Shown here in pieces: positions 16,868 to 39,000 of a DNA stretch of 64,000 bases. Source of the DNA: Chara braunii. Its lineage: Eukaryota; Plantae; Charophyceae. The position numbers and the translations under genes were made by a program. The number at the start of each line of letters is the position of its first letter. The stretch's first letter is position 1. Below the pieces are notes generated by a model. It saw only the letters and a list, made by a program, of their open reading frames with translations. It was not told where the DNA came from and did no database searches. The stretch is from contig BFEA01000008.1 in assembly GCA_003427395.1 (NCBI GenBank), positions 266,969 to 330,968 of the forward strand, given 5' to 3'.

Positions 16868-18010
16868 GGCGTCACACCCCCCATCCTGCTGGGTTACAGG
16901 GCAACACAACTCACCCCAGCTCCGGCCAACGTCGTCTCCGCAGCAACCCTTGGTTGTCCCGTGGGATACCCCCCCAAAGCACCCCCAGATCTCTCTACCA
17001 GGCCTCATGCCCCTGCATCAACAGGTTACAGGGCAACACCCCAGCACCAGCCAGCGTCGTTCTGGCGTCGAACAGCCTTAGGTCACCGAGTATTACAGCC
17101 TTGAAACTACCTAGAAGAGATTGCCAGGAAACCCCAGGATCCAGAAGACTTTTGAAGAACAGAACAGACTACCCCCTTTTTCTGAGAATTGGATTTAACT
17201 ACGTAAAAATTCGTAATTGAAAACATAAAAAAGGCCTAGCGGGTCCTAGAAATGCTCAGAAACCCTTGGAAACCCTAACGCTCCTTCCGAGGCCTTTCAA
17301 CACTGTCCTACTCGCTGCCGAGCTCTTCCAGGTCTCACACCCCACATCCTGCTATGTTACAGGGTGACACAACTCACCCCAGCTCCGACCAGCATCGTCC
17401 CAGCAGCAACCCTTAGCTGTTCCCTAGGATGCCCACCCCTAACCATCCCCAGATCTCTCTACCAGGCCTCATGCTCCTGCATCACAGGTCACAGTGTAAC
17501 ACCCCAGCTCCGGCCAGCGTCGTTCTGGCATCGAGCAGCCACAGGTCTGTGAGTATAACAGCATCAAAAACCACCTGAGAAAAGTTGCTAGGGATCCCGG
17601 GAGCCCAAAAGCATTCTTAAGACCCCTGAACAGCCATCTGTAAAAAGAAAAAAGAAGGGGGGGGGAAGTCAAAACTAAATACCAACCATCCTAAAGACCC
17701 TCCCTCAACAAAGGAGCCGTCGGTCTCGACTTTCAGTCCTCGAACCAGAACACACTTGGTCTCATACCCCCTTCTGCATGGGTAACAGGGCACCGCAACC
17801 TTCCCCAGTACCGACCAACCTAGTTCTGTCGGATAGGAAGTGCCTTCCTCCCTCGACAATTCCCATAGCGACAAACCCCCACACAGGTTACTGGGTCAGA
17901 ACCCCGGTGCCGCTTGTGTTGGACGATCTGGTTATGCCTTCCACCCTCGGCATAATTCCATGGGCCTCAAGCTCCCCCCTTGGTCACAGAGCCAAGCTCC
18001 AGCACCGGCC
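16868..18010 (-). ncRNA. Array of 7 SRP-Alu-domain-like three-way-junction motifs
   Basis: Units at 16868, 17001, 17331, 17465, 17758, ~17867 and 17963 show compensatory changes and a UGURA-type junction. Confidence 0.6.
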
Positions 18011-18154
18011 CATGTCATCCCAGCCTCGTCCTCCCGACCTACTCACCTTCCCCGACATCCATCCTCTAATTGAAGGCCATCTTTCCTCCGCCCATCCTCC
18101 CCTTTTTAATTCCCCCCCTCCTTCCTTGATCAAAATCAAAATTATCTGAGTGTA

Positions 18155-18510
18155 TAGAGCTTCTATAGGAATTTATTAGAAGAATCTTTTCAGAAATTTC
18201 TTAGAAGCTTTTATAGGAAAATATTTCGTTTATGGAACTTCTATAGGAATTTATTTGAAGAATCGTTTCAAAAATTTCTTAGAAGTTTTTATAGGAAAAT
18301 ATTTCGAAAATATTTTTAGAAGCTTTTATAGGAAAATATTTCGAGAAGGAGAAGTTTTTTGAAGCTTTTATTCGGAAAATATTTTGAGTTGTAGAATCAG
18401 AAGTTTCTGAGAAGATTTGATAGGAAATTATTTCGAGAATATTTTTAAAAGCTTTTATAGGAAAAAAATTCGAGAATCAGAAGTTTTTTTTTGGAAGCTT
18501 TTATAGGAAT
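18155..18510. repeat. AT-rich minisatellite (AGAAGCTTTTATAGGAAAATATTTCG-like, ~30-bp period)
   Basis: About ten degenerate tandem units are directly visible. Confidence 0.8.
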
Positions 18511-19494
18511 TCCAGTACGAGGTTTGAAGTCTAAACCGAGCATGTCGATCATCAGGAAAATTCCAATTGATCAGTAGAGAGAAAACAAATCAGGAAATCA
18601 TAGATTGAGAAATTCAGAAGAGCACCCAATGAACAATAGAAAGAAATAGAATCAAGAAATCGTGAACTGAGATCTTCTGATTATCCACCCTTATAGAATC
18701 TATCATGAGTACATGTGAATTAGGAAATCATGGTTATGAGCAGGGGGAAGCTGCCCTCCTTCCTTTCTTGCAGCCGTGTGACTTAGTAAAAAATCCCGTA
18801 AGAAGAAAAACCCTCTGTCTCCCCTTCATCCACCCTCACTCAAACCCAACCCCTTCACCTTCGGGAGGGAAGAACAAAACTCCCTCCATCTACCTGCCCT
18901 ACCAGCCTCAAGGGCCTGCCATAACCCAACACAGGCAAACGAAGGTACCAATCGGCCATCCCCCTAAACTTCTCCAACATCGGGATGGTGGGGCAACATC
19001 TCGTTGAGCCTGCCAACGAGCTACCCCAGGGAGTTCAAGCTTACCGCAGAGACTTGAGTCCACCGCTTCGCAGGGCAGATGAAAGTAGACGGAGGAGACC
19101 ATGCATCCTATGCCGTCATCTCCAGCCGCTCTCCTTGTGGCGCCTTAATCAGCAAACACGTGCAGAAAGGGAAAGAAAGGATGTCGAAAGGAGAAGGGTC
19201 CACACGCTCGACTTCCATGGCGCGCCCTAAAACTTCGATATCTCGTGATTCGCTGGGCCGTTCGGTCTGAAATTTGGACCACCTCTTCTCCTCAGCGTAG
19301 ACCACCGGTGGTCCAAATTTCAGCTCAGGGCGCGCGCCCAATCGCGTGCAATCCTCGAGCGCGCACGGGCGATTTTCCTTGCTGCGCGCTGTTACCCGAC
19401 GCGCGCGGCTCCTCTCCGTGGTGACCTTGATTGATGCTGCCGGGGCGCAGCGCTCCCGGTAGCGCTGTGCCCCGCCCCCAACACTCATAACGCA

Positions 19495-22330
19495 TTTTTT
19501 CTTATTGTTATTGTTATTGTTCTTGTTATTTTTATTGTTATTAACTTAATTGTAATTAATTTATGCATCAGCAACACATATTCATGAAACAATGACCCAC
19601 GTCCACGGACACCTCAGCATTACTTGGCCCCATTACATTACCCAGCTTGGACTGAAAGAATGCAAAGACCAGGTCGAATGCTTAGAATCCCTTGACTCCC
19701 AAACAAAACTCTCTAAAACTGTCCAACACTGTCTTATTCCCGGTCGAGCTCTCCCAGGCCTCACACCCCCACCCGGCTAGGTGACAGAGCAACACGACTA
19801 GCCCCAGCTCCGGCCAGCGTCGTCCCATCAGCAACCCTGGTTATCCCTTGGAATGCCCCCCCAAAGCATCCCCAGATCTCTCTACCGGGCCTCACGCTCC
19901 TGCAAGCAGCAGGTTACAGGGCAACACCCCAGCACCGGCCAGCGTCGTTCTGGCATCGAACAACCGCAGATCCATGAATGTACCAATATTAAGCAGCCTA
20001 AAGTGAGTTGCTAGAAGTCCCCTGAATCCTAAAGCATTCACTAGTTTTGCTAAGAAACAAAAAACACATGCACAATTCAGAAAACAAACTCAGATACGCC
20101 CATCAATCCTCTTTCCTTCCTCCGGCAAGACTTACTGCAACAGAGCCACCATCTCCACTGCTGCTATACCCTATTTCCATCCTACTAGCTAGCCCCGTCA
20201 CTAATAGGGCGCTTGATATCCCACCATCTACTTATCCCACTCACATCTTTTTTTGAAAAAAATTAAGGAGAATTCCAAGAAATTTAGAAAAATTGGAGAA
20301 ACGAAAATCAGAGTTGGACCCACCACCAATCCAAATCAATCCCTCACTACAGGCGAGAAACCACCACTCAAGCTTTCAGTCCTCATACCAGAAGTCGTCA
20401 GTTCTCACACCCCCCTTGCTAGGGTTACAAGGCAACACAAAATGCCCCAGCACCGCACTAACTGTCTTCTGGCGGATAGGAAGTGTCTTCCTCCCTTGAC
20501 AACTTCCTAAGCTGCCAACCCCCCTACCGGGTTATAGGGTCACTGCCCCAGCATCAGCTACGTTGAAAGAAGTGGTTATGCCTTCCACCCTCGGCATAGC
20601 TCCAATGGCCTCAAGCTCCTCCCACGGTCACAGAGCCACTGATCCAGCACCGGCCACTGTTGGCCCACCCCGTCCCCTGAGCCACCCTTCCCCTACTGCG
20701 CAAGCCCACCCAAAATTTCTTCCAAACCATGCTTCCGATTTTCACCCTCCATTCAAAAACCAAAAGGAGGAAGGACAAGGACTAGAACCACTAACAATCC
20801 AACTCCTACCCTCGCCACCGATGAAGGACACGCCGACCAAGCTTCCAGTCCTCGTACCAGAAATCATTAGATCTCATACCCCCCTGCTAGGTTTACAAGG
20901 CAACACAAACTGCCCCAGTACCGATCTAACTATTTCTGACGGACAGAGAGTGCCTCCCCCCCTCGACAACTCTCTGAACTGTATGGCCCCTCAAAAGGTT
21001 ACAGGGTCGCCGCCCCGGCAACAGCTACGTCGGGCGAGATGGTTATGCCTTCCACCCTCGGCATAACTTCAATGGCCTTAGGCCCCCCCTGGTCACAGAG
21101 CAAATGCTCCAGCACCGGCCAATGTCGTCCCNCCCCNCCCTTCTAGTTAGACTTACCACTCTGAACCGCCGATCTCTCTTCTAAGTGAGCCCCCCACTTC
21201 CCACCTACCTCGAATTCGACCTTCCCCCTTCTGATTTGCAGCACTGAACTAAGACTAATTACTTGAGAAAAAACTATTTGAAAAATACCACACGAATATG
21301 AATTTCAAAAGCGTTGTATTCAGAACAGGAAAATCAATTGCTATATTGATAAGAGTTGGAAAGTAGAGAAAACACTAAGACTAATTTGCTAAGTAAAAAC
21401 TAATTAACATCAAAAAGATTGGGAAAAGGCAAATCTCTCAGACCGAAAATACGAGTTGATGACTTAGGAAATCCAAGTAGGTAAACACATTAGGTGCTAG
21501 CGATGTCTGTTCTTGCAGGACCGCTAAAGAAAACCGAATCTGGTGTCCACCCGGATTTTCGACTCTGGTTTTCGGAACCCAAGGTTCAGGAAATCGTTCA
21601 GACCGTAAATCATGAAAATGCTCAGACAGTAAATCAGAACCGTAAATCAGGAGTTACAAAGTAGAAGAAACAGATAGACAGTCAAACTTTACAGCAAACA
21701 TACAAATTCTCATTGGGATATACCATCAGCTACCCTGATTAGGACTTAAAACCAATACAATGAAAATTTCCAATTGATTCAACCTAGAGCAGTCATGGGT
21801 AATTTCAACTCTAAAAAATTCCACAGAATCACTGACGATTGACAGTGGTACATAAGACTCACGACTAGGATACAAAAACTAGATTAGCTAATCAAGAAAA
21901 TTTAATCAGTATTTCCATCAACCCAGACAACACGACCCTAAGTATGGCGTCCGGACTCAGGACGAAACGATAAGAGGAACAATCCACCAAATAATCCCTG
22001 TCCTGTTTTCTTCAACAGCCCCCATCTTATCACAACTCCCTCAAACCCTACCCCAGGATTTTCGGGGGAGGAGAACCACCTCCCATTACTAGCACCTAGG
22101 CTCTGAGCAACGCTAGCACTGAAAACATTGACGCACTTCTTCCGTTTCCCAAAAGAAAACCAGAAAAAAGTGTGGCTCCACCTCACCAAACCCGTTAGCG
22201 AGGCGCCACAGGAGGTTCAAGCATCCATCCATAACCACTTACCACCCTGTTGAAGAAGAGGAGAGAGACGACCTCATCACCCACACCAATCCGTTGCCCC
22301 TTTCGAAACTCCGCCCTATTCACATATCAT
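19495..22330 (-). mobile_element. Alu-like-motif array retroposon, copy B
   Basis: T/TTG-rich tail at 19495-19545 and eight motifs at 19757-21120. 19670-20040 is the reverse complement of ~38685-39047, and 21249-21295 matches 37209-37254. The 5' boundary is uncertain. Confidence 0.65.
19757..21120 (-). ncRNA. Array of 8 SRP-Alu-domain-like motifs
   Basis: Units at 19757, 19888, 20401, 20510, 20607, 20869, ~20979 and 21074. Confidence 0.6.
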
Positions 22331-22857
22331 CAAGAAGAGAGGCCTCACGAATGCCCAGCAGCTGATGACGACTCCAACAGCGAATCCTGCATGCACACCA
22401 ACCATAGCCACCACCCCCGGTCCAAAAATTGTTGTCTTGTTTTCTTTCTCCCTTCTGAACCGCAGTTGCCTTCCCTCTTTTTCTTTCTTTTTTTCTTTTT
22501 TCCCCCCTTCTTCTTCTTCTTCTTCTTCTTCTCTCTGAGTAGCCCATATTTCTGGATCCCCTCATGGCCAAATTGCAGAAATACCTCTTTGCCAACGTAT
22601 CGTAGCAACTTCAACTTTACCGGTCTGCGCAGGTTTGGTGACAAACAAACACGTTTGCGAGCACCCCAGCCTTTTTTGAGGTCTATCTGTGTAGAAATGC
22701 TGGTCCTTGGGAAAAGAAAAAAAAAGCCGATCCGTGACGACCGTGACGTTTCAGTTGCCAGTTGTGATGTTTCCGTTGACAGTTGCAAATATACAGGGCG
22801 GTACCTGGTTTTGCAACAGAGGACCTGTGGGCCTTGGACCTTGGAGCTCTTGCCTCA

Positions 22858-23549
22858 GGTATGTCAGCTATGGACAACCAGATGGTAGTAACGGTCACTC
22901 AGCACACCGAGCTCCAAACATCCATACACACCACACCAAACCAGTCGGAGACAGCCAAAATAAGGGTGTGTTGTGTTCGGGGGAAGACGGTAGTCGTCCT
23001 AGCTTGAACCGCCAACGATGGCTGCTCTGGTACTATTGGCGTACTCGCAGTAGCTTGCCCGCCAGGTTGCCCACCATTGAGCCTCCTATCCGGTAACGGA
23101 CAGCACCACGAAATATGTCCTGGTTGGCCGCAGTTGTAGCAAGTTCGAACCCTGGTACATTGGAGTTGCCGTTAGATGCCATCAATATCTTCACTGGAAG
23201 CTACTTCGACAATAGTATCACTTCTACGTCGGTTACTCCGCGAAAGAGAGGTATGTCAGCTATGGACAAGCAGATGGTAGTGACAGTCACTCAGCACACC
23301 GAGCTCCAGACATAGGTACACACAACACCAAGCCAGGTGGAGAGCCAAGAGACTTGCTGTTAATACCGCCTGCAGTATCTTCCAACGTGCTAACACGTAT
23401 CCCCAACCCACTACCACTACCACTTCCTCGGTTGTTGGAATACCCGTAGTAGTATATGGAACCGCCGTTCTCACATCAGTACTACGGTACTACTACCCGT
23501 CGTAGCTGCAACCGTCAACAATGGCTGCGCTGGTACCGCCAGGTTGCCC
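22858..23549. repeat. Local degenerate duplication
   Basis: GGTATGTCAGCTATGGACAA...CACACCGAGCTCCA at 22858 and 23250. CGTC(C/G)TAGCT...ATGGCTGC at 22995 and 23498. Confidence 0.7.
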
Positions 23550-23743
23550 NNNNNNNNNNNNNNNNNNNNNNNNNNNNNNNNNNNNNNNNAAAAAAAAAAA
23601 AAAAAAAAAACAAAGCAGGTACCGGCCGTCAAATCTGCACAGAAACCGTTTTTTTTTTTTCTCTTTTTTTTGAAAGGGCGACGGCCTTGAGATACTACCA
23701 TTGAGCTGACTGGCCCCAAGCAACTCGTTAGTAGTTGGTTTTA

Positions 23744-24172
23744 GGGCGTCGTTCGACACTCCTCGGGGACGCGATTCCGAGGATTCCGTCGTCTTTCCAC
23801 CTGTCCTCAGAGCCGATTTTCGGAACAGAAATGTGAAAACACTCCGAGGATAAATCCTTGGGCTCCGAGGATTTCCCAGCCAAATCGCCTCTTGGAGCCC
23901 GAGGATCCGTGTTTCACAGAGAGAAGAGGGCACACACATAGAGAGACGCTACAACCGAGAATTCTGATCGTGGCGGCACCCGATTGGCTGAAAGCCTGAA
24001 GCACAACTTTTTTTCTTTTTTTTTTTCCTTTATTTTTCTAACATTGCTCTGAGGATGAGTCCTAAAACCGATGCTCCGAGGATGAGTGGAACGAAGACGA
24101 CAAAACCCTTAACTTTTCCGAGGATTCATCCTCGGAGCCCGAGGATGCCCCGAGGAGTGTCGAACGACGCCC
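23744..24172. mobile_element. PIF/Harbinger (Tourist-like) MITE
   Basis: TIR GGGCGTCGTTCGACACTCCTCGGGG with TSD TTA/TTA and many internal CCGAGGA motifs. Confidence 0.9.
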
Positions 24173-24267
24173 TTACTCATCAAGTTCCATCATCATCTGG
24201 ATTCGAATCCGGTCTGTATTTCACTAGTTCAGAGGTGTATCCACTGAACTAGGCGCACGGTCGGTCC

Positions 24268-24291
24268 CTGTCTCTTATACACATCTAGATG
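24268..24291 (+). other. Nextera mate-pair junction adapter (Tn5 mosaic end), assembly contamination
   Basis: Exact CTGTCTCTTATACACATCT followed by AGATG, the first 24 nt of the junction adapter. Confidence 0.95.
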
Positions 24292-24326
24292 ATTTCAACA
24301 GTTCAATGGTGTACCCGCTGAGCTAA

Positions 24327-24765
24327 GGGCGTCGTTCGACACTCCTCGGGGACGCGATTCCGAGGATTCCGTCGTCGTTCCGCCTGTCCTCAGAGATGAA
24401 ATCGGAAATGAAAATGTGAAAACACTCCGAGAACAAATCCTTGGGCTCCGAGGATTTCCCACCCAAATCGTCCTCGGCTCCAAAGGACCTCGCGAGGTCC
24501 TTTGGGGCCCGAGGATCCATGTTTCACGGAGAGGAGAGGGAATGCATGTAGAGAGACGACACAACGGAGAATTCTGATCGTGGCGGCACCCTATTGCCTG
24601 AAGCCCAATTTTTTTTCTTTTTTTTCCCTCTTATTTTTCTGACATTGCTCCAAGGATGAGTCCTTAAACCGATGCTCCGAGGATGAGTGGAACGAAGACG
24701 ACAAAAAACCTAAATTTTTCCGAGGATTCATCCTCGGAGCCCCCGAGGAGTGTCGAACGACGCCC
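24327..24765. mobile_element. Second copy of the 23744 MITE
   Basis: Same TIRs, diverged interior, flanks TAA / TCA. Confidence 0.85.
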
Positions 24766-25594
24766 TCAGGCTCCTGGGTCACAGAAACCTTTTAAAAAAC
24801 GGCCGTTCTGCAACGTCAGCGGTATATGGTTTTTTTTTTTTTGTTTTTTTTTTTTTTTTTTTGGTATGTTTCAAAACACGTATTTCGGTAATTTGCCTTG
24901 TGTTGGGAGAGCTATAGGTCTGGCTCTAGCTGGTGCTGGACTCCATCTTTTTTTTGCCCTTCCCTGAGTGGCAATGCCTACGATTAGGAGTAGTGGTAGG
25001 TAGGTAGTGTGAGGTGAAATTGAGAGAAGAATATAGCTTTCTCGCTCGCTTTCGCTATAGGTCTGCCTCTGTATTGCTGGGAGGGGCTACACATGACGGC
25101 GATGTGAGCCAGAAGGACCTCTTCGTTTTCACGAGGGGACTAGAACCCCCCCGTCCCCCACCCTCTCAAGGCCATGCTCGCACTAATCCGTCTCTGCAGG
25201 CATCTGACCGCTTTAACGGGCAGGGTCAGCCCTGGATGGATCTGACGTCTGGAGATCAGTTGAATAAGTCCCAATTGTGTCAGTATGCCCTATTGCATCA
25301 CCACACCAATCTCGAAATGGGCAAAATGAGAATGAACTTCCTTTTAGAACACGGGCAGATGCACCCTCCACACTTTTGTCCTTTCCACATTTCGCGAGTG
25401 GTGTCACGAGGCCCTTAGACAGGAGACATACCTCTTCATCGCCTCGAGGGGGCAAACAATTGGAAAAAACTCCTGTCGATGAGGCTTTTTTTTTTGGGGC
25501 AGAGGTCATTCAGGTCATCTCAACTTGTTTCCTTTCAGGTAAGGTCCAGCTTTTTTTTTTTTTTTGAAGGTCCAGCTTTAGGATATGGTTGCAT

Positions 25595-25905
25595 GTGCCC
25601 TTCGGGATATCCATTAAAATTGGAACCATACAAAGGTCTTTTTTTTTTTCTTTTTTTTTTTATCACCTGGGTGGATGCTAGAGGTGCTGATAAGAGCAGG
25701 CATCCCTAGCATTCTCGGGAGGCCCCATCTATTGGTGGGGAGCAGCACCTGCTGGAATCCAGGTCAAGCGTCCCTGGAAATAATTCTTGGTATACAGAGG
25801 ATATAGTAGCTCTCCTGCGTATACAAAGAAGATTAGCATGGACCCTGCGCAAAGATGACACACATACATCAAGAAACTGTCCCAAAAAAAGAAAAAAGAA
25901 AAAAA
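25595..25905 (+). pseudogene. U6: U6 snRNA retropseudogene split by an insertion
   Basis: 5' part GTGCCCTTCGGGATATCCATTAAAATTGGAACCATACAAAG (25595-25635). 3' part AAGATTAGCATGGACCCTGCGCAAAGATGACAC... (25829-25884). A-rich tail, with TSD AGGATATGGTT(gc/cg)AT at 25580 and 25911. Confidence 0.92.
25636..25820 (-). mobile_element. LINE/SINE 3'-tail insertion inside U6
   Basis: Poly(T) at 25637-25661, the shared tail core at ~25726-25774, and an 8-bp TSD ATACAAAG (25628-25635 / 25821-25828). Confidence 0.85.
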
Positions 25906-26010
25906 GGAGGAGGATATGGTTCGATGCTTAGAGTACGTCTGATTGCATCTCTGTGTTTTTTTTTTGTTTTTTTTTTGCTGTCTTCTGATTGCATCTCTGA
26001 ACCTCTGCTG

Positions 26011-26177
26011 GGGGGTGGTCCCACTAGCAAAGAGGATCGGATAGAAATCCTGAATCTGGCCATGTTGTATGCAGAGATACAGAAAAGCAATTCTATCTTG
26101 ATTTCCTGCTCCTGTCCTCGAACACGTCCAGACTCAGGCATTCAATCCCATGCTCTCTTGCTAATGGGACCACCACC
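26011..26177. mobile_element. Fold-back Harbinger-type MITE (14469 family)
   Basis: GGTGGTCCCACTAGCAA...TTGCTAATGGGACCACC with CTG flanks. Confidence 0.7.
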
Positions 26178-27697
26178 CTGATGTACCCCACTGGTGAACA
26201 CGCAGAGGGAACTGGCAGTAGGGTTCGATAATTATTCTGTGTGATGACTTGGCGGCGGAAAGGAAAGGATGTGGACTGACATCCCCCTGAATAGAAGGGG
26301 CCCTCTGGCTTTTTTTTTTTTTTTTTTTGCCCGAAAGGTTCTTCTCTCAGACAGGGGACAGACCTCCACGAGGGGGCCAGAACGAACAGTACACACCCTG
26401 ATCAGAGAATGTACACAAGCTAGCGGTTCCGTCTGACATAGTCATGCACAGCGTGGGGGGTGGGGTGCAGTCGTGGGCAGAAAGTAGGCTGGCCCCCAGT
26501 CCTTATTTTCAGCAAATCGAAGACTAGATTGTGCTTCCAATCCCAACTTATGGCCTATGCACAGCTACCATCTTCAGGCAGGGAAAGGTCCTTTATCTTC
26601 AGTTGGGGAAAGGTCCTCTATCTTCAGTCAGGGAAAGGTTTACTCCTCCCGTTGGTAAGTCCTCTGCCAACGAGGCTAATGCAAAAACGTTTCCTCGATG
26701 ACTTATCTCTCTGACTGATAAAGCAGCCAGCTCTCTTTTTTTCTTTTTCTTTTTTAATATTTTTTATTATGAAGGGCGACGGCCTTGCGATATCATCGGG
26801 CCTCACTCTATCTCCAAAACAGCGATTTGGAGAGAAGTGGCATCGCCACACCAACTCCCGAAAATCGCAGTCAAAAAGAAATTGGCGAGCGGTCAGAATG
26901 CGGTTCTCGGGAGTGCTCTCGAACTTTGTGGATCGCCCCGCCTGCAAAGCACCGGATTTGAGGAGTGGTCCGAGGCTCCTCCGATTTCGGCCCCAAACTG
27001 GAGATCGCGCCTCGGCCGGCAACCATCTTTTGCCACCGTTTTGTCTGGGTTCGCCACACCACTCTCGAAATGTGAAAAAAGACAAAAATGTGGCGGGTGC
27101 ATTTGGCCATGTTCTAGCGGGAAGTTCATTCTCATTTTGCACATTTCGAGAGTGGTGTGGCGAGGCCCGTTGTCTGCGCTCTCCAAAAAATGTTGGGCCT
27201 CGTCTGACGAATTGGAAACTGCCGCTTGGAGAGCGCAGTGTGGCGACGAGCCGTCTCGAAAGGTTTTTTCACATCTCCCGCATTCGGGAGTGCTCCCGAA
27301 CTTTTTTGCGTTTTCGGGATAGGTGTGGCGAGGCCCATCATCATCGAAATTGCCAGCCCTAGGTATGGTGTCCTCTTTATATTAAAAAAAAAAAAAAAAA
27401 AGAACTGTAGTTTTTTTTTTTTTTTTTTTGTTGAAGAAGTATGAATCTTTAATTTCAAATATGAAACGATGAGGCCGGGAATACCTCACAAACAACCCGG
27501 ACATTGGCTGGGGCCAGTACCCAGAGCAGGCNNNNNNNNNNNNNNNNNNNNNNNNNNNNNNNNNNNNNNNNNNNNNNNNNNNNNNNNNNNNNNNNNNNNN
27601 NNNNNNNNNNNNNNNNNNNNNNNNNNNNNNNNNNNNNNNNNNNNNNNNNNNNNNNNNNNTTCGAACTCAGTCAGGTCTGTATTTACTGACTGAGCTA

Positions 27698-27803: not shown

Positions 27804-27889
27804 TAGGCCAGTTGGTAAGCAGCCAGCTTTCATCGATCGAGAATGTCCTTGCGTGGGCGACTCAGATATGCAACAGGTAATTCCGACCC

Positions 27890-28419: not shown

Positions 28420-28585
28420 GGGTGAGGTCGCATTAGCAAAGAGGATTGGATTGAACGCCTGAATCTGGTCGTGTTAGGGGAGAAGTGCAGAAAATTGAGG
28501 TTGAACTGCTTTTCTGCATCTCTGCTGAAAACATGCCCAGATTCAGGAGCTTAATCCAATCCCCTTTGCAAGTGGGACCTCGCCC
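28420..28585. mobile_element. Fold-back Harbinger-type MITE (14469 family)
   Basis: GGGTGAGGTC...GACCTCGCCC with TSD CAG/CAG. Confidence 0.75.
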
Positions 28586-29366
28586 CAGGACCTTCATCGA
28601 ATCCTGCCACAAAATCTAATCGAATACCATGCATACCAAAATCCCGGCAAGCGGATTCTCAAACCGGGAACACCCAGCATGGCCCATACACACACAAACT
28701 GTGAAACAACACTCAGCATGACACGTGCACGAAGCACTCGGAAATAATATGATCACGGAGTCGCCCTTTCATTCAATCAATTTCATTTCACACCTGAGAA
28801 AAAAAATCAGTGTCAACTTACTATCAAGGTCAATGGTGGAGCCTTTCGAAAAAAAAAAAAAGAAAAAAAGAGGCCTGAGGAACGATTTTGTTTATTCTCA
28901 CTTAAAAAAAAAAAAAAAAACCTAAGCTGTTTTTCCCCTCGCCCGGGCACCCCACTTGTGCCCGGATACACGCCCGGGCATGCCCCAGTGTGTAGAATTG
29001 CAATACGAACAACTTTTGGCTGGGGGTCACATCAGAATTCAGGAATCCTAGTTTGGTGGAGGAAGGAGAGCGTGATATGTGGGGGCCATCGACGGGTGGG
29101 ATCCGGACGCTGCACCGTACCTGACGAGACCGATTGGGGGTTCTGCCCCTGGATCTTTGATATGGAGGTTTTTGCGGGGGTCTCCTGCCCTAACACTGTT
29201 GTCAGGGTCAGCCCGCGAAGGTGACGAAGACAGGAGCTACGGGAGATTGCTGGACTTCTCATGTTTGCTGCACAGCCGAGGTACGTGGGGATTTCGTTTA
29301 CGATCTCCAGTAGGAGCGCACATCAACTTCCTGGATTGGGTGTGCTCACCTGTCTTGGCCTGTGTT

Positions 29367-29424
<58 letters not shown>

Positions 29425-29609
29425 TTGTACATAGTGGACTGTTTGTGTTGGATTGTTGTTGTTGGTTTGGTGTTAGTTATCTGAGTTCTTTTTCGCCGTT
29501 TGGGTAACAGTTGTCGTAATTAGTTGTGACTCTAGTGTAGCATTTTGCATGCGATGGAATGAAATAGAGAGTGACGGTCTGTAGAAACGCCACTATGGTG
29601 GGCAGTGGG

Positions 29610-30105
29610 GTTTCCTAAATCGCTAGGAGGCGGGTGGGTTTCCGAGGTCTTTGACCCCTGCCGCGTGGGAGGTAGGATATTACCGCTGAGACATTGAATT
29701 TGGGTCAGATATTCAGTACATCTTAATAGGCTTCTGTTTGTTGTCATCTGAATTCTTAAGGAGAACTGGTGAGCATTGCTCCACAGCGGCTTCGTCATGG
29801 AGGGAGGCAAATCACCCTTAGGGAGTGTATGTAGATTGAGGGAGAGGCTTTGCCCTAAATCACGAGGAGGTGGGTGTGTTTTGCGAGGCTTTTTGGCCCC
29901 TGCCGCGCGGGAGGTAGGGTAATCCCCTGGTTAGTGAAAACAGCATTGTGGTGGGAATTGGTGTTTTTGTAAAGAGGAGTGTGGGGAGGTGCTATCCGTT
30001 TTAAATCGCGAGGAGGTGGGTGGGTTTGCGGGGTCTCTGTCAGTAGTTTGGGGCCTGTGGGCACAGACCCCTGCCGCGCGGGTGGTAGCGCGGATTGGCA
30101 GGGGT
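29610..30105 (+). repeat. Three spaced copies of a bipartite hairpin motif
   Basis: TAAATCRCKAGGAGGYGGGTG plus CCCCTGCCGCGYGGGWGGTAG at ~29615/29655, ~29855/29897 and ~30002/30068. Confidence 0.7.
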
Positions 30106-31721
30106 TGGTAATAACTTCGGATGAATGGTGGACATGATCACGCAGCGCTGACCGCTCGTTTCGTTTTTGTGGTTTTGATTCGTTTTTCTTCGGTAGTTCC
30201 TTTTGCACATGATTTCTTAATGGTCAGTGGAATTTTGGGTCACTAAATTAGGGTTCACATGACTATTGTGATTATAATTTTCTGCGAACGTCTTTTCTTA
30301 GTACGTTTTCACGTTTTTGCGTTCGGTGCCCAGCTCTTGAGCATGGAGAAGACTGAGAGATTATAGGATGCAGATTCTATGCTTGTGTTCCCACTCACGG
30401 TTACTCTTAGGCCTTTGTTCCATAATGGCAATTCGACAGTAAGCCCGTGACTGAGCGTTAATGGCCTTTTCCTTGAATTGGACTCGAACGGAAATGGAAA
30501 AAAGTGATGACAACGTTTCTTTGTTATATGGTACAGTATGACGGTAACGAGAGATTACACAACCGATAGGATTCCGCTTGGGCATGCTCACGACAAGACT
30601 CAGATAATGAGAGCTCGATAACAGAGAGGATTCCATGTTGGCATACACTCTCGGTAGGTAGGAATTTCCTGCAGGTATCTGACCACAATTATGTCCACAT
30701 TCGGTAGATAATCTAAGCACAGAATTGGTGGAATTTCGAGGGATTGCACTTGAAGATCCAAGGGTGCGTGGTGGGAAACCCGTCAAGGTGGTTCTGGCTT
30801 GCTTTGGACTGCAGACGGTTTTTGAGTTGCCCGCCCTATACTGTGCAGTTGAATTTGTTTTAGGGCTTTGAGAACCCCCCAAGTACCGGGAGTGTTTATT
30901 GGACCGAGTTAGCGCCAGGGCGGTACAGCGGGTGATCTGGTGGTCTTCAGGGAAGGAGGCGCAGTGTGGGGTAATCAAGGTCTGATTGAGGGTGACGAGA
31001 TACGTACCTGGTGCATGAAGAGAGGTAGGCTATGGAGTTGACAGTCATGTACATTGGTCTTCGAGAGTTGAAGTGAGCCTGTTGCGTGAACCCAGGGCTG
31101 TAGGTAGGATAGTCGGGCAGAGTAGGTTGGGCGCTGGGCGCCAGACAGAGAGGAGTGACTTTGGATACTGTGTTGGTGTGGCCTACGGGCTTGAACATTG
31201 GCTCATTACTTCATTGCTCTATATGGATGTTTTCTCGGTGCATTTTGTACTCTCTGCTTGGATGCAACTACCTGGACATCTGTGTGATTTCGCAACATTG
31301 GTTTTCTGTATATCGTTCACAACTTCACACTCACATTCCTTGCATTTTCTTCTTTTTTTTTTTCAACACACAACACACTCACCCCTTCTATTCTGGGGGT
31401 TACCAGTTCGGGTACTTATGACCGACAAGCATAGAGAGTCAACCAAGAGAAAAACACATCAAGTGAGAAGGAGAAGGGAGGCCTACCTGCCCGGCCCGAG
31501 ACACCCTGGCAGGGGACTGTGACTAACTACCACACCGACGAGCATCAGGCTCGTGGCATCCCACCATCCCACCTTTGGCCTTTCTCCCGCCTTCCGCCAT
31601 CCACCATTGCTACTTCTCTCTCTCTCTCTCTCTCCCTCTCNNNNNNNNNNNNNNNNNNNNNNNNNNNNNNNNNNNNNNNNNNNNNNNNNNNNNNNNNNNN
31701 NNNNNNNNNNNNNNNNNNNNN

Positions 31722-31752
<31 letters not shown>

Positions 31753-32014
31753 CACACACACACACACACAAACAAAAAAAGAACTTCCCCCGCTTTTTTT
31801 TTCGGAGGCCCTGCGCGGCCTCAAATTTTTGTTAATATTTTTTTGTGGTTTATGACGCGACATCCCACTCGGGTCTAAAACACTCCTTCCCAACTTTTTT
31901 TTTTTTTTCCTCGACCCCTTATTTTCGGGGTGCGCAGCACCCCGTGCGCTGTGCGCAGTGTGGCGCGTGTGCGCGGTGCAGCGCACATTGATGCGCACAC
32001 ACACACACGCAGAC

Positions 32015-32066
<52 letters not shown>

Positions 32067-32305
32067 AACAAAAAAACGAACTTCCCCCCCTTTTTTTTTC
32101 GGAGGCCCTGCGCGGCCTCAAATTTTTGTTAATATTTTTTTGTGGTTTATGACGCGACATCCCACTTGGGTCTAAAACACCCCTTCCAAACTTTTTTTTT
32201 TTCTTCTGGACCCCTTATTTTCGAGGTGCGCAGCACCCCGTGCGCGCGTGTCGTGAGCTGTGCGCAGTGCGGCGCGTGTGCGCGGCGCAGCGCACGTCGA
32301 TGCGC
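31722..32305. repeat. ~300-bp tandem duplication joined by CA microsatellites
   Basis: 31770-31995 is nearly identical to 32065-32305 and lies next to an assembly gap. Confidence 0.75.
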
Positions 32306-32476
32306 CGCAAGTATGCATGGGCCATAATTATTTTGGTGAACCTGGTTGGTCTAATGGCTCGACGAAGGTGAAAATACTTCTTTACCTCTCTTTGACGTTT
32401 TTAATTTCGCTCAATTAAACTTGGAAAAGAAAAGAAAAAAAAGGAATACTCGTTGCGGGACTCAACCCAATAACTC

Positions 32477-32953
32477 TTTTTTTTTTTTTTTTTTTTCGAA
32501 AACATGCTCCAATCTATTTGTGAGGAGCAGCACTTGCTGGGAATCGGGCTCAGCATCCCATATGAAGACATGTACAAAACAATTTATGAACCAATTAAGG
32601 TACCGGGGCCATTTACCCGGTTTCAGCTTTGAGAGTATCCTCCAAGATCGTGAACAAGTTACTGGACTTCGGGATAGATGATGAGAAGACTAAGAATCCT
32701 TTTTTTTATGATCGCTAAACTCCTCCTGAAATCCACCGCAATTTTCTATCTCGAGTATCTAAGGGATTTCCAACAGATCATAACAAAGCTCACTAAAACT
32801 GACTTATTCTCTGACAAACTCATCCAGGCCTCACGCCCCCTATCTGGTAGGTTACAGAGCAACGCGACTTACTCCAGCTCCGGCCAGTGCCGTCCTGTGT
32901 CAGCAACCCCCAGCTGTCCCTTAGGATGTCCCTGCATAGCATCCCCAGATCTG
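32477..32953 (-). mobile_element. 5'-truncated Alu-like-motif retroposon, copy D
   Basis: Poly(T) at 32477-32496, LINE tail core at 32510-32560, one motif at 32827-32885, and AATAAC direct repeats at 32469 and 32954. Confidence 0.65.
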
Positions 32954-33570
32954 AATAACCTTTGGACTAACTCTGCATAACCTCCGCAGGGCTGTCAGTT
33001 CGATGATGATAACCCGAAGCCCTCGCCCTTTCAAAAAGAAAAAGAAAGAAGAAGAAAATAAAAGAAAGCGTTCTCGGTGTGGTAATTGCATTGGGCAGAG
33101 CTCAGGCTCGTGAGTCAGTCCACGAGCAAGAACGTGTTCAAAAAGTCACCCCCGAAAAATTGAAAAACTTCCCAAAATAGAAGGGGAAGGTAACGCCTGC
33201 TTAGCATGAAAACTGTTTTTTTTTTTTTTTTTTTTTTTTTTTTNGGGGGGGGGGGGGGGGGGGGGGGATACGAGCACCCACTCCTAGTAGACTAGCCGGT
33301 ACTCCAATCTATTGATGGGGAGCACGTACCCAGGGCTTACAGCATGAACACACCGCAACAGTCACCTTCCAAATTGTTGGTCAAGCTCTGGGATGGACAG
33401 AGCTGGTGCAAATTGGAATTTTGTTGGAAATTTGGCAGCGAGTTTGGCTGAAGAGGCAGTGGGGATGAGTTCAAACCAAGGTTTAACCTGCAACAATGAG
33501 TATGCCACCTCCGGTTCGTCCAAGTTAGTTAATGGCGCAGCTAATGCATTGAATTACCAATTGAACATAA

Positions 33571-33638
33571 CAAGGTAGCGCAGTCTGGTAGTGCATTTGT
33601 TCTGGATACAGAGGGTGATTAGGTTCTTGTCACATTGA
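33571..33638 (+). pseudogene. trnP: NUMT: decayed mitochondrial tRNA-Pro(UGG)
   Basis: TAGCGCAGTCTGGTAGTGCATTTGTTCTGGATACAGAGGG...TGTCACATTGA follows plant mitochondrial, not plastid, trnP. The T-loop is partly deleted. Confidence 0.8.
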
Positions 33639-33660
33639 ATCAAAATCAGAGTAAATTGAC

Positions 33661-33704
33661 ATGAAATCGTCCGACTTTACAAGCCACAATTAACTTCTAC
33701 TTTC
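33661..33704 (+). pseudogene. sdh3: NUMT: 5' fragment of mitochondrial sdh3
   Basis: ATG AA..AAT CGT CCG, then TAC AAG CCA CAA TTA ACT TCT ACT TTC (NRP...YKPQLTSTF), directly downstream of trnP. Confidence 0.75.
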
Positions 33705-33815
33705 CTAGGCTACCATAGTGGCCCGGGACCACTTGTCTGCCCGGGCCAAAATATTTAAAAAATAAATCAATTAAAAAATTAATAACTTTTTTACTTTTTT
33801 TGTTTGTTTCGGTAT

Positions 33816-33971
33816 TTTTTTTTTTTGGGGGGGAGGGGGGCGGGAGGAAGAATTGTGTCGTTGAATTATAAATGGAAGGAGAAGTCGGGAATCCTCAACG
33901 AACAACCTGGAAAGTATTTGGGGCCATTACCCAGCTTAGGCTTGTGCTGGAAACCAGGTCCAGTGTCCCAT
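33816..33971 (-). mobile_element. LINE/SINE 3' tail, type 2
   Basis: T-run followed by the reverse complement of the tail seen at 1155-1277, 4337-4444 and 27432-27531. Confidence 0.6.
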
Positions 33972-36013
33972 ACCTTCCTTAAAATGACAATGTTTCCAAA
34001 GTAAACTGGAAGCCCAAAAATTCAATCTACCAAATTGATCCTTATCCAACAGGGGTAGCCTCCGACTAGAAGCCCCAGATTCCCAATCCCAACTCAAATT
34101 TGAACCAACCTAGATTAAGACTAGTCGGAAACTACCTTGCCCACCTAGTCATTTGAAGTGGACCCTAGCTGAAGAATTACAGAAGCCTGCCTAATTGGGC
34201 AGAGCAGAAACAACTTGTGAAGAGTAGCGTATCTGTTGCTCCTAGTCATGGAGTAGCTTGCCTCTAGATTGAGGGAGTAGCCAAGGACAAATCATCAATT
34301 TCCCATCCTGCAAGAAGGTTGCCAACTGGCCGTTTGCGGCCCATGTACGTAAAAACCAGAGGAGGCGATGAGCTATGAGCTATATGCGAATGCTTGAAGA
34401 AATTAACGAGTCATAAATTGAACCTCAATTGTGACTAAATCATGGTAAATTCTTAGATATTGCCGAATTAGTGGAACAGAGCATGTTAATATTGACGACG
34501 GCGGATGAACGCAGCCAACAGAACGGCCACATGAGAGAGTTGGAGAGAGGAAGGTGGATAAATGTGCCCACATAGTATATGAGTGGTGAAGATATGAGCA
34601 GGGCTTCCAGGATGGCACAGAATCGAGCCTAGGACACTCCCCATGCCACTAAGGCATGAGTGACCCTATGTCACTGTTTCCTGCTTGTGAAGACCAAACC
34701 ATTCTGCGGTAAACTTCAATATGTCTTGGTACGCGGCTGTGGTTGGGACAGTGTTTTACGCCCTCCGCACCAGAAAAAATGTTCCCACCGCCGCTAGTGA
34801 GTCTTCCACTCTCAATGATGGCACCGCCGTCCATAGGGCTTCAGGTCTTCACATGCCCAGTCAAGGTCTCTTCCCTATTATGTGAGTGGTGAAAATATGA
34901 GCAGGGTCTCCAGGATGGGTCAATCGTACAACACTTCCTATGCCACTCAAGGCATGGGTGACCCTGTGTCACTGTTTCCTGCTCTTGACGAGCAACCACT
35001 TTTTAAAACTAAAAAAAATCAATGTATCCCTGTGAGCAGACTGCCAAGCCCTTCCTGATATTGACTAGATCCACTGCGTGGTTGACTGTCTGCAAACACT
35101 ACTCTCCCTTCGAATACGTCGAGTCTCGTGTCTAGGAACGACCTTGTATGTGACCATTCACAACGGCCGATGAAGGTCAAGATGAATGAAAACGGAGCAC
35201 AAGTTGCAAACAGGACAAGAGGTAAATGCACAAACGACATAAGGAAATCGATCTGGCTCGTAATTACAACCGAATCCATCAGCGGTATACATTTCCAACT
35301 TACGAGTAGAATCAGCCTTCCAAATTAATGAATCTAGCCTAAAACTGTGGCTAATGCATACAAATTGTGCCGAAAGACTCACATAATTAATGAATTTAGC
35401 ATTGTACGGCAGAAGGCTTCAAAAAGGGGCAAATCTGCCAAAAGGGGGGAAATCTAGACAAAGGGCGTGGCTAGATATATGTACTTCGTTAGTTACCGTC
35501 TCGGTAAGACAGACTTTGACTACACCTGGTGCCGCCTTGTCTGCTGAAGTAGTTGAGCCGCTGTTTGCTCTGGAATCTTGCCATCCCATCTCCACACCAG
35601 TGCAATTGGTAATTAGGCATCTTCACCCATTGAACTCAAAGTCTGCTCAATACAGAACACCATACAAAATGACAAGATCAAGACAACATCGAGAGAAGAT
35701 CTAGATAAGGAACGACTAGGACTTCTAGGACTGCTGGTCTGAAAGCCAGATTTATCTATATCTCACGTGCAATAAGAAGGATCCGCCATCCTTCTCCTGA
35801 AGACACCTTTGATGCTTTACTTCCACGTGAAGAAGCTCATTTGAGCCGGGACTACGCGTGTGCCCCGTATCATCGATCTCGCTCCCACTGCTGCCAGTGG
35901 TACTCCCACTCCTGCTGGCAGCGCCGTTATCGACAGCGCCTTCGACGCATGACGTTAGTCTGCAACCTCCATGCAATAACTCACAGTTCCAGACCCGATA
36001 TCTCCACGGGCAG

Positions 36014-39000
36014 GCGCAGCGTGGCCGGGAGCGCTGTGCCCCGTTCAGTGCAGGAATTGCGGGAGCACGACGCAGCACGGCGTGGTGAGGCGAGCGCGGA
36101 GCGCAGCATGAACGGAACGGCGCGAAGCAGCATGATGGGCATAAAATGGCGATGGCGGGTGATGGCGTGCGTTGGAGATTTCGTGGAGGCAAGATAGGAG
36201 GGGGACGGGCGATGACAGGTCGTCGGTTGCAGTGGAGTGGAACCGGGATTTGTCGAGGAGGAGGTGGGCGAGCGGGGGCTCGATGGTGGGGGATTTCCTA
36301 TACTTGTTGTTTGTACTCCATCTCTCCTTTTTCTTGATTTAGTGGCCTCCGGATCATTGGGCAGGGACTAAACTCTCTGTGAGGTTGCGTCAACAGGCTT
36401 GACGTGATTACTCAAAACGCAATCGCATATGGGCAGTAGGTGATTGTGTCCTACCAAATCTCTTCTGGTTAGTGCAGCTTGCCAAGGGGCCATATTGGCA
36501 CGGGCTATGGGGAGGCGAACGTGTTTCTCCCGCACGAAGAGGCAGGGGCTGAGTTTGGACTCTACAGCGGCCTGACAGTTGGATCAAGGGACTGCGAGAG
36601 TGGAGCGCTACGTGATGGTGTTTCAACGCGACTTTACGCACCGACGGAATCTTTAGTGATTCTTGAGGCATGACATATTTTTGTTGAGCTTGTTTCTTCA
36701 AGTCTTGTTTTCTTTTTTGAAAGTTTTTCCTGATATGGGAGTTTCTTAATAAATTTCTTGGATGGCAATTCTGATTTCTTAGTTGATCCCAATCGATAGT
36801 TCGTAATTTTTCTTGTTGATTTCGCGATCTGGTTTTAGAATCGTTATGGTTCTCTCACACACAATTAATTGTCGATTTCTTTTTCTGCTTAGTATTTCCT
36901 GATTTACTGTCTGAGCGATTCCTTGAACGTTGGGGTTCTGGAAATCAGAGTCATAAGTCCTTTCAGGCATCAAAATCGATTCCCTATTTTGTTTCCCTGT
37001 TTGGATTTTCAAATCCTATCAAATTCGATCTTCAATCTTATCTTCATCTCGATTGATTTCCATAATTCGATGCTAAATTCATGATTCAAACTTCGTTTAC
37101 ATGACTCATAAAAAATCTTAAACTCGGTTTCCCAAATTTTGAAATTTGTATTCTGATTTTGAAGATGTAAATCCGAGATTCTTCTTTAAACTTGAATTTC
37201 GTACTTGACGTGGGATTTTTCAAACAATTTTTACTCAAGTAATTAGTCTTAGTTGTTGTTTTTAGCAAGGGTGTCTCAACTTGTGCTGTTGAGAGATCGG
37301 GGTCAGAGGTGTTGGAATGGATATCTCCTTTAGGGTTGGAGTCCCTCCCTGCGAGGGTTACACAAGATGGGTGGTGTGATCTTTGAGAGGGTAGGGGCAG
37401 TATTGAGGGTTTGTCCTTTTTTGGGCCACGCTGATTTTTGGGACGGATCAGCTACGGCGGTTGGGGAGAAAGGACAAGGGGTGTTGATGTCAGCAGGGTG
37501 AGAGTTGAGAGGGCTGTTCCGCTTGGAGGGGGTGGGGCAGGAAGGAAGGGGGATCTCCTGCTCTGTGGGGGCATACTTTAGGGGGTATTGTATGCGATTG
37601 AGGAAGCAGGAGGGTTATCTGGGGGCTGTTTTGAACTGGGGCGGGGAGGCGAAAGGGCGCCTTCCCGCGGAGGCAGTAAACAAACAGGGGGTTTTCTTTG
37701 GGGGAGAGGAGTAATCCCTTTGGCTCTTGTGACCCCTTTACATGTAACTGAGACCTCAATAGGCGTTGGAGTTTTCATGGGGAGAGAGGGTTGTTTTTTC
37801 CTCTCTTCCCCTCTCCCTGTGGGAATAATGGGCACTGGAATGTTCATGTGGTTTTTCGGGATTTTTGGTGTCTGATTTTCCTACTTTTTCTTAATTGAAA
37901 AATTCTTCCATGGTTTGGTGCTGGAGGCATGGGGATGTGGTGGTTGTGACGCCGGGAGATGACGCGCTCTGCGGTGAAGGGGCTAGCGTGCAGGGTTGTA
38001 ATAGGGTACAACAATGGTGGAGATGGTGGCTTCATCGTGGTAAGACTTGTCGGAGTAGGGTTCTTGAGGTTTGTTGGGGGGATATTTGCAACCAGTGCAT
38101 GAAGGAGACGAATAATCAGATCTACAGCTATGGTGCTGATTGGTGGCTTGATTGCTTTTTGCCTAGTCCTGAGTCCCGGTGGTTTGCGGAAAGACGAGGC
38201 CAGAACGACGCTGGTCGGTGTTGGGGCTTGGTCGTGCTGCCGTGTAACTTGAGCTCTACGAGGGCATGAGACCTGGTAGAGAGATGTGGGGAGTTGTCGA
38301 GGGTGGAAGGCACTCTAGTGTCTTTTGGTGAGTTGGTGCCTAGTCGATGCTGGCTGGAGCCGGGGTGGGTCGCTTTGCCCTGTGGCCTAGCAGGTGGGGG
38401 GGGTTCTGGGGTGTGTCGTGCCACTTTGTAACCTAGCAGTTGGGGGCATGAGGCCTGGTAGAGATTGGGCATCAGGATATAGGGGTGAGGTAGGTAAGGG
38501 TTGGGCTGCTGAAAGGCCCTAAGGCAGGTGTTTTTTTTGTTCCGAATGCTTCTTTGATCCAAGCTTTGGGGGGGACAAATTTTGTGTTCTTGTTTAAAAA
38601 ACAAAAAGCCGAAGCTAGGTAATGGCCTCGATATCTCAAGGATATTTTCAAAAAAGGTTTGTTTACAGGTGGTTTTGAGAATGCTTTAGGATTCTGGGAC
38701 TTCTAGCAACTCGCTTTAGGCTGTTTGATACTGGTACATTCATGGATCTGCGGTTGTTCGATGCCAGAACGACGGTGGCCAGTGTCGGGGTGTCGCCCTA
38801 TAACCTGCTGTTTGCAGGAGCGTGAGGCCTGGTAGAGAGATTTGGGGTTGCTTTGGGGTGGGCATTCCAAGGGACAACCAAGGGTTGCTGTTGGGACGAC
38901 GCTGGCCGGAGCTGGGGCGAGTCGTGTCGCTCTGTAACCTAGTCGGGTGGGAGTGTTGAGGCTTGGGAGAGCTCGACAGGGAATAAGATAGTGTTGGATG

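Follow-up and report, generated by a model that had tools for sequence, protein, structure and literature searches.

The 64,000-nt stretch of the Chara braunii genome analyzed here (contig BFEA01000008.1, positions 266,969 to 330,968; hereafter the window, with positions counted from its first letter) raises the question of why a non-coding retroposon family should carry, many times over, a short RNA fold that resembles the Alu domain in signal recognition particle (SRP) RNA, that is, the 7SL RNA. A previous sequence-only reading of the window had described arrays of about 21 such units within a polyadenylated retroposon family, and had proposed that they recruit the SRP9/14 heterodimer and in this way exploit the machinery of long interspersed nuclear elements (LINEs). 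The computational analysis that followed showed that the fold of the units is real, strand specific, and covarying. As judged by nucleotide signature and architecture, the units probably derive from an Alu 5′ domain.

Location, fold and covariation of the units

The units were located by anchoring on the GUAA-like linker and by MAFFT alignment, and a covariance model (CM) trained on 20 of the 21 units was scanned over both strands of the 64-kb window. The units stand at the coordinates and strands first proposed. There are 21 homologous units of 47–61 nt, of which seven lie at 16868–18010 (minus strand), eight at 19757–21120 (minus), one at 32827–32885 (minus), and five at 38213–38963 (plus). 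The CM recovered its 20 units with scores of 39–65 bits, exclusively on the sense strand, and no further convincing unit was found by it on either strand of the window. A single extra match at 24762–24804 (12.3 bits, E 0.78) was taken as chance. The description of these units as arrays holds for the multiplicity of copies but not for a head-to-tail order, since Tandem Repeats Finder (TRF) detected no array of units, and neighboring units are ∼90–460 nt apart. They are thus interspersed.

The units belong to five paralogous types, which are organized in a triplet module (X+Y+Z) and a pair module (P+Q). They are carried by three full-length copies of the retroposon, that is, elements A, B, and D with seven, eight, and five units, respectively, and by a 5′-truncated copy (C). 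The X-Y-Z triplet is found once in the 16.8–18.0 kb block and twice in the 19.7–21.1 kb block, while the three full-length elements contain two, one, and one copies of the P-Q module, which means that the number of modules differs between element copies. In element D, the fifth unit type is mixed.

The layout originally suggested for the RNA, that is, outer helix, GG, helix 2, hairpin 3, linker, hairpin 4, helix 2′, UGA, and outer helix′, stands as the general fold but is not uniform. Y-type units lack the GG and UGA linkers and have a different outer helix (AGCUG/CAGCU), and hairpin 4 is reduced to 2–3 bp in X-type units. Pairing was scored on a MAFFT alignment that had not been fitted to any structure, in which the four helices proposed earlier correspond to 19 pairs and 374 cells. 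Pairing was found in 86.6% of these cells, compared with 36–56% when the 3′ partners were slid by 1–3 columns. Two-sided changes occurred in 34 cells versus 3–12 in the slid alignments, and none of 500 shuffles reached the observed pairing values. A trimmed alignment gave the same picture as the full one.

A control that preserves the relatedness of the units was based on all 2,157 column pairs of the same alignment, and random sets of 17 pairs were drawn from them 20,000 times. The mean score of the proposed pairs was 0.36, against 0.12 ± 0.034 for the random sets (maximum 0.28), and nine of the 17 proposed pairs were placed in the top 5% of all column pairs. Together with the excess of two-sided changes, this confirms that pairing is kept while the sequence changes. 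As had also been noticed from the sequence, the G-U wobbles are strand specific: they account for 73 of the 374 paired cells, including the closing pair of hairpin 3 in 20 of the 21 units, and the opposite strand would pair at only ∼67%. The share of G-U pairs indicates that the structure exists only on the sense strand, as RNA.

The changes are distributed among the types in a distinctive manner. At pair 3 of the outer helix, C-G is replaced by U-A in the Z units, in d1, and, among the Q units, in a5 only, so that the change from C-G to U-A has taken place at the same pair in at least three separate lineages. Pair 3 of hairpin 3 is A-U in the X units and in c1, and helix 2 of the Z units is UACU/GGUA. 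The location of such changes between old paralog types, and their recurrence at the same pair, argues for long selection in the active lineage of the element. The outer helix is closed by the two flanks of each unit itself, and pairing with the flank of a neighboring unit would instead produce A-C mismatches in a3, a5, b3, and d1. The circularly permuted connectivity of the early proposal is therefore borne out, with paired changes to GGUC/GACC (a3, a5, and d1) and GAUC/GAUC (b3). De novo prediction by RNAalifold, for which six Q-type units were extended by flanks of 35 nt (one unit came from a public contig described below), recovered all four helices and, in addition, an 8-bp distal helix beyond a conserved internal loop. 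When RNAalifold was applied to four whole P-Q modules, the Q unit was recovered and the P unit was assigned another, long-range fold; the prediction is thus not robust for P.

In element A, all units are on the minus strand. They consist of a1 (17963–18010; X type, hairpin 3 GGAGC/GCUCU; CM score 54.0 bits), a2 (17867–17915; Y type, linker AGUAA; 41.0 bits), a3 (17758–17816; Z type, outer helix GGUC/GACC, linker UGUUA; 55.4 bits), a4 (17465–17515; P type; 58.8 bits), a5 (17331–17390; Q type, outer helix GGUC/GACC, hairpin 3 GGGGUGA/UCACCCU; 54.6 bits), a6 (17001–17052; P type; 65.2 bits), and a7 (16868–16927; Q type; 57.3 bits), the last having Metazoa_SRP as its best Rfam match. Unit a6 is the one that had served as the initial example, and its minimum-energy structure is the proposed fold.

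The eight units of element B, also on the minus strand, are b1 (21074–21120; X type; 52.4 bits), b2 (20977–21026; Y type; 39.7 bits), b3 (20870–20926; Z type, outer helix GAUC/GAUC, helix 2 UACU/GGUA; 54.8 bits), b4 (20607–20655; X type; 54.2 bits), b5 (20510–20559; Y type, linker UAUAA; 39.5 bits), b6 (20401–20458; Z type; 55.0 bits), b7 (19888–19940; P type; 62.4 bits), and b8 (19757–19815; Q type, linker UGUCA; 58.7 bits). Rfam matches were obtained for b6 (Plant_SRP, 11.7 bits, E 0.74, from model position 1) and b8 (Metazoa_SRP, 12.5 bits). The truncated copy C holds the Q-type unit c1 (32827–32885, minus; hairpin 3 GGAGUAA/UUGCUCU; 61.9 bits).

Element D, on the plus strand, contains d1 (38213–38273; outer helix GGUC/GACC; 51.6 bits, aligned by MAFFT), d2 (38352–38411; linker UGUGG), d3 (38398–38455; 50.6 bits; Rfam Plant_SRP at 8.6 bits from model position 1), d4 (38777–38829; P type, linker UAUAA; 50.6 bits), and d5 (38904–38963; Q type; 51.2 bits). 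Unit d2 is partial and fused to d3; it aligns by MAFFT and is missed by the CM as a full unit. A further stretch at 18895–18957 (minus), in the 5′ part of the retroposon, ends with UUGAGGCUGGUAGGG and resembles the 3′ side of a unit. It is CM-negative and, by this resemblance, may be a very diverged unit.

Similarity to the Alu 5′ domain of SRP RNA

The likeness to the SRP Alu domain concerns both the architecture and the key nucleotides. Hairpins 3 and 4 are adjacent and enclosed by helix 2, and the junctions of helix 2 with helix 3 and of helix 4 with helix 2′ lack unpaired bases. A triad formed by the G4-U23 pair and G24 has been named critical for SRP9/14 binding (PMC12265939), and the UGU U-turn is part of the SRP9/14 site (PMC12265939, PMC8137916). 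All 21 units have the G that closes hairpin 3, 20 have the U paired to it, and 19 have the G that comes next. The linker conforms to UGUNR and varies precisely at N: all 21 units keep the U of the U-turn, the N position is occupied by A, G, C, or U, and the last position is a purine in all 21 units. The linker had been given as UGURA, of which the UGU (complete in 18 of the 21 units) and the final purine stood, while the N position proved variable and d4, b5, and a2 deviate.

Rfam searches provided further alignments. E-values in these searches count all 4,227 families, and the gathering score of 70 bits belongs to SRP models that cover the whole RNA of ∼300 nt, of which a unit could match ∼50 nt. 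The units align from position 1 of the SRP model onward (positions 1–47), through helix 2, helix 3, the GUAA linker, helix 4, and helix 2′, in agreement with the suggested kinship. Unit a7 matched Metazoa_SRP with 18.2 bits in a 5-kb search and with 19.6 bits (E 0.0063) in a 681-nt search, and a Q-type unit on a metagenome contig (L009, see below) reached 21.3 bits (E 0.00083). SRP was the top Rfam family in the searches with b6, a7, and the L009 unit, as well as for d3. Furthermore, the Plant_SRP consensus uGUaACCCa..uGGGGgCAu, followed by the start of helix 5, recurs in the units (cmscan). A search of the whole window at E ≤ 10 returned no SRP match; SRP matches appeared only in the narrower searches with laxer filters. 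At gathering thresholds, the only Rfam family in the window was U6, and the 7SL gene of the host is absent there.

In comparison with genuine SRP (7SL) RNA of plants and metazoans (RF01855 and RF00017), the units share helix 2 around hairpins 3 and 4 and the G-U closing pair followed by GUNR. With the plant RNA in particular, they share the consensus GUAACCCA...UGGGGGCAU and a subsequent UGAGGC-like start of helix 5. On the other hand, they comprise only the 5′ domain and a helix 5 stub, that is, the 4-bp outer helix with its paired changes, to which the 8-bp distal helix is added in Q units. Helix 5 has its partner strand 5′ of the unit and not at the 3′ end of the RNA, the loops are non-complementary, and the scores fall far under the family threshold. 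On the basis of these shared residues and helices, the units probably work like an Alu 5′ domain.

The carrier retroposon and its transcripts

The carrier is best seen in element D (36014–39116, plus), a complete non-coding retroposon of 3,103 bp. It is bounded by a perfect 17-bp target-site duplication (35997–36013 and 39117–39133), starts with a GC-rich hairpin (36014–36043), and ends in an A19 tail (39098–39116). The 5′ part is rich in GC and the middle in AT, and the 3′ part bears units d1–d5, which begin 2.2 kb from the 5′ end, the last of them ending 134 nt before the tail. No open reading frame (ORF) longer than 158 aa is present in this element, the longest one (158 aa) being on the opposite strand with a TTG start, and there is no head similar to transfer RNA (tRNA). 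The sense strand contains 33 runs of four or more T, the first of which is located 315 nt from the start. These runs point to transcription by RNA polymerase II (Pol II) and make RNA polymerase III (Pol III) unlikely.

The 19-nt core of the 5′ hairpin occurs in the window only at 36014–36043 and at 19441–19474, with zero occurrences expected by chance. The second site belongs to the 5′-terminal hairpin of element A (19441–19478, minus), which stands 17 nt after the A-rich (TAACAA)n-type tail that ends element B (19495–19543, minus). On the minus strand, two elements thus follow one another in the region of 16.8–21.1 kb, and A, the downstream one, is interrupted near position 16430 by a small repeat similar to short interspersed nuclear elements (SINEs). 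Copy C (32700–32990, minus) ends in A8 (32700–32707) and is similar to element D only from the last ∼280 nt on. In the copies, the sequence 3′ of the last unit is common for ∼100 nt and then differs. Taken together, the family displays the hallmarks of a retroposon, that is, target-site duplication, A-rich 3′ tail, a 5′-truncated copy, and no reverse transcriptase of its own. This is the non-coding poly(A) retroposon family that had been postulated. The units were also said to lie always in the sense of the poly(A) tail, which applies to three of the four elements, namely those with an identifiable A-rich tail.

Three assembly gaps (23550–23589, 27532–27659, and 31641–31721) fall between the unit blocks and touch no unit, no array, and no duplication-bounded element. 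Near a unit there are only two single N (21132 and 21137), 12–17 nt upstream of b1. The finding is independent of continuity over any gap.

Apart from the units, a second structured motif is found in the spacers. Seven hairpins, which separate neighboring X/Y/Z units or, in one case, follow d1, share the invariant 10-nt loop GAGGGNGGAA, closed by C-G, on covarying stems. Two of them are in element A (17825–17965, minus; loop cores 17841–17855 and 17935–17949) and four in element B (20468–21076, minus; loop cores 20484–20498, 20579–20593, 20951–20965, and 21046–21060), and the one after d1 is at 38283–38328 (plus) with the invariant loop GAGGGUGGAA. The spacer hairpin of the P-Q module resembles a diverged version of this type. 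No Rfam match and no known counterpart was found for the GAGGGNGGAA hairpins. The AT-rich middle of the retroposon at 18153–18509 (minus) includes tandem repeats of 37 and 78 nt (TRF), reminiscent of a variable number of tandem repeats (VNTR) region, to which the AT-rich middle of element D (36650–37250) is only patchily similar.

Transcripts were sought in three oligo-dT RNA sequencing (RNA-seq) runs labeled with the same species as the runs in which this stretch is contained, using reads at ≥90% identity to the element. The runs gave 156, 905, and 290 reads, respectively, most of them 90–95% alike, a level which indicates that they come from other copies of the family. Depth was highest over the P-Q units (38725–38958), with a peak at unit d5. 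The first mate was mainly on the minus strand in two runs (58.3 vs. 1.3 and 22 vs. 5), which by the convention of stranded libraries corresponds to RNA in the sense of the element; in the third run, both directions were found. Variant units of like design are also present on loose ends of reads. The retroposon family is therefore represented by polyadenylated RNA in the sense orientation.

A pattern scan of metagenome contigs returned 23 loci, of which only one, the above-mentioned L009 (BFBZ01010938.1, 1,646 nt), has real units. It contains four units at 32–62 bits that are 75–82% identical to the copies of the window, and it also carries the small SINE-like repeat of the window. Both features suggest that this contig probably stems from the same or a very close organism, and it provides no evidence for a wider distribution.

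Of the SINE-like repeat (core GGGACGCTGGACCCGGTTTCCAGCA), 11 copies are present in the window against a chance expectation of 0.01, and several of them are followed by poly(A). The copies are at 1155, 4337, and 9087 on the plus strand and at 15740, 16384, 25750, 32535, 33945, 53743, 53836, and 54082 on the minus strand. Rfam matches to U6 small nuclear RNA are found at 25783–25890 (plus), 1325–1419 (minus), 11736–11848 (minus), and 14098–14193 (plus). One of the matches is above the gathering score (49.5 bits) and three are weaker (30.3, 23.0, and 18.6 bits). They are probably U6 retrocopies, and the first of them (25783–25890) adjoins a copy of the SINE-like repeat. At 2236–2727, (GA)n faces (TC)n in a long perfect hairpin, which produced spurious sub-threshold matches to numerous microRNA models on both strands. 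A decayed L1-type LINE extends over ∼50.4–55.8 kb (plus), with an Exo_endo_phos domain at 50472–51140 and a zf-RVT domain at 55479–55778, and is followed by a duplicated block of ∼125 nt at 55870–56300. Thirteen other long ORFs of the window gave no Pfam match.

Possible role of the units and known systems compared

In order to account for the multiplication of the units, the explanation favored here, to which we assign about an even chance of being correct, is that they are 7SL-derived modules in a non-coding retroposon, kept for the binding of SRP9/14 and for the capture of LINE enzymes. The 21 units are paralogous copies of one RNA module in a polyadenylated retroposon family of C. braunii. 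In the sense RNA of such a module, a short helix made by its own flanks, presumably a permuted stub of SRP helix 5, encloses helix 2, and helix 2 encloses hairpins 3 and 4 with the UGUNR linker between them. Most likely, the module descends from the plant-type 7SL RNA of the host and was multiplied inside the element. Each copy would bind the SRP9/14 heterodimer of the host, and would be kept for this reason. Binding would bring the RNA of the element to ribosomes, where a newly made LINE reverse transcriptase could take hold of the poly(A) tail close by and insert a copy of the element into the genome, as has been proposed for primate Alu. In that system, SRP9/14 binds to a 5′ Alu domain of 46 nt, which Alu requires for its retrotransposition and which is also functional inside Pol II transcripts (PMC11760393).

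Several observations weigh against this explanation. The folding energies of single units are ordinary compared with shuffled sequences (Z-scores from −1.9 to +0.7), and the proposed fold is the minimum-energy structure in only about half of the units. All Rfam scores are far under the gathering score (at most 21.3 vs. 70 bits), as is to be expected when ∼50 nt are compared with a model of ∼300 nt, and the P-, X-, and Y-type units have no SRP match in Rfam. The UGU is broken in three units. A loop-loop pseudoknot is unsupported, as the caveat of the sequence-only reading had already stated: the complementarity of the loops of hairpins 3 and 4, measured as the mean longest complementary run between them, is 1.50 versus 1.49 in shuffled loops, and the hairpin-3 loop has only 2–4 nt in 10 of 20 units, too short to kiss. 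With the pseudoknot test failed, the unit is not fileable as a canonical Alu domain. In Plasmodium falciparum, the Alu domain has no loop-loop pseudoknot and nevertheless binds SRP9/14 via the UGU (PMC8137916). The pseudoknot is thus not indispensable for binding, and its lack in the units lowers but does not remove the case for SRP9/14. Regarding the LINE partner, the L1-type remnant, the only one of the window, shares no 3′ tail with the element except A/T runs and was rejected as the partner. Finally, the RNA-seq reads do not separate the element's own transcripts from read-through.

The missing pseudoknot and the sub-threshold scores would also suit modules that are structured sites for another binder, either proteins of the partner LINE or another RNA-binding protein of the host, with a likeness to SRP that is convergent or coincidental. 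We consider this unlikely, although it deserves attention: the spacer hairpins with their invariant loop indicate that the element carries other motifs similar to protein sites, and non-mammalian LINEs often recognize 3′ structures (PMC7245038). The match to SRP spans the architecture, the G-U/G triad, part of the plant SRP consensus, and a UGUNR that varies just at N, with SRP first among the 4,227 families in four independent searches, and this speaks against coincidence. Recognition of a 3′ structure, in turn, is opposed by tails that differ between copies after the last unit while the units stay. The fold and its SRP likeness would hold equally if the modules, although derived from 7SL, had another role (stability, export, translational arrest, packaging, or escape from silencing) or were passengers whose structure persists temporarily. 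Alu-domain RNAs do have roles outside retrotransposition, according to reviews, and the tail of the LINE remnant offers this possibility some support. It is a rather improbable one in view of the compensatory changes between old paralog types, repeatedly at the same pair, which indicate long selection, and of the short distance between units and poly(A) tail (in element D, 134 nt) that the capture model requires.

The energies of single units, which are no better than those of shuffled sequences, would be natural for a GC-rich DNA repeat without functional RNA structure, whose complementarity is inherited or due to chance; since all units are homologous, common pairs could indeed have been inherited. 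Such an origin is very improbable, because the two-sided changes far exceed the slid, shuffled, and all-column-pair controls, the 73 G-U cells make the structure strand specific, and the same pair changed from C-G to U-A in separate lineages. That the unit is a self-cleaving ribozyme, a tRNA-like head, or an RNA of some other class is hardly credible: the check for a better fit to another class, which the sequence-only reading had itself named as potentially refuting, gave no ribozyme or tRNA family at E ≤ 10 in the Rfam searches of the arrays, and ARAGORN predicted 0 tRNA genes in the window.

The SINEs derived from 7SL (SINE1) have been reported only from Euarchontoglires and hagfish, with a putative marsupial family in addition (PMC7245038, PMC13023118), and no report of 7SL-derived mobile elements in Chara or in any plant was found in the literature. 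Similarly to SINE1 (e.g., primate Alu, rodent B1, and hagfish SINE1-1_EBu), the Chara element is a non-autonomous LINE-type retroposon with an A-rich tail and an Alu-domain fold that compensatory changes have preserved, and Alu is itself composed of two such domains. In contrast to SINE1, the Chara element has a size of 3.1 kb instead of 100–300 bp, and its folds, five to eight per full-length element, are located in the 3′ half and not at the 5′ head. Moreover, these folds are closed by their own flanks (permuted) without a loop-loop pseudoknot, many T runs make Pol III unlikely, and the host is a streptophyte alga. Given its size, its unlikely transcription by Pol III, and folds that do not form its head, the element is not a SINE1.

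Two other systems share features with the Chara element. The P. falciparum SRP Alu domain, which adopts an open Y-shaped form, is likewise an Alu 5′ domain without the pseudoknot, but it is present as a single copy in a genuine SRP RNA and not in a mobile element. The SVA elements of hominids are kilobase-sized, non-coding, composite, and polyadenylated retroposons whose internal repeat number varies between copies, as in Chara, and they depend on a LINE. However, the Alu-like part of SVA is made up of Alu fragments in antisense orientation, which are not considered to fold into Alu domains, whereas the folds in Chara covary and lie on the sense strand. As far as is known, the promoters of plant 7SL genes are external (upstream) and not internal, so that these genes would be unable to seed a Pol III SINE. 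This may have forced the form seen in Chara and may explain why the fold is embedded in a long transcript rather than heading a Pol III SINE.

The idea that parasites gain access to LINEs by means of an Alu fold and SRP9/14 rests on vertebrate systems. A retroposon of Chara with up to eight such folds per copy would be a very distant and independent further case. Its build is also different, with folds that are internal, multiplied, permuted, and without the pseudoknot. It is conceivable, though we hold it with less than even confidence, that the hijacking of SRP9/14 and the ribosome by a LINE parasite arose independently in the plant lineage, in the form of multiplied, pseudoknot-less, flank-closed Alu 5′ domains in a long non-coding transcript of Pol II type. 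Two questions become testable through this element, namely, whether SRP9/14-mediated docking at the ribosome is a general route for LINE parasites, and which parts of the Alu fold are needed for it. The family is also of relevance to the annotation of the very repeat-rich Chara genome. If such an independent origin is true, the capture of LINE enzymes through an Alu domain would be a general eukaryotic strategy and not a vertebrate oddity.

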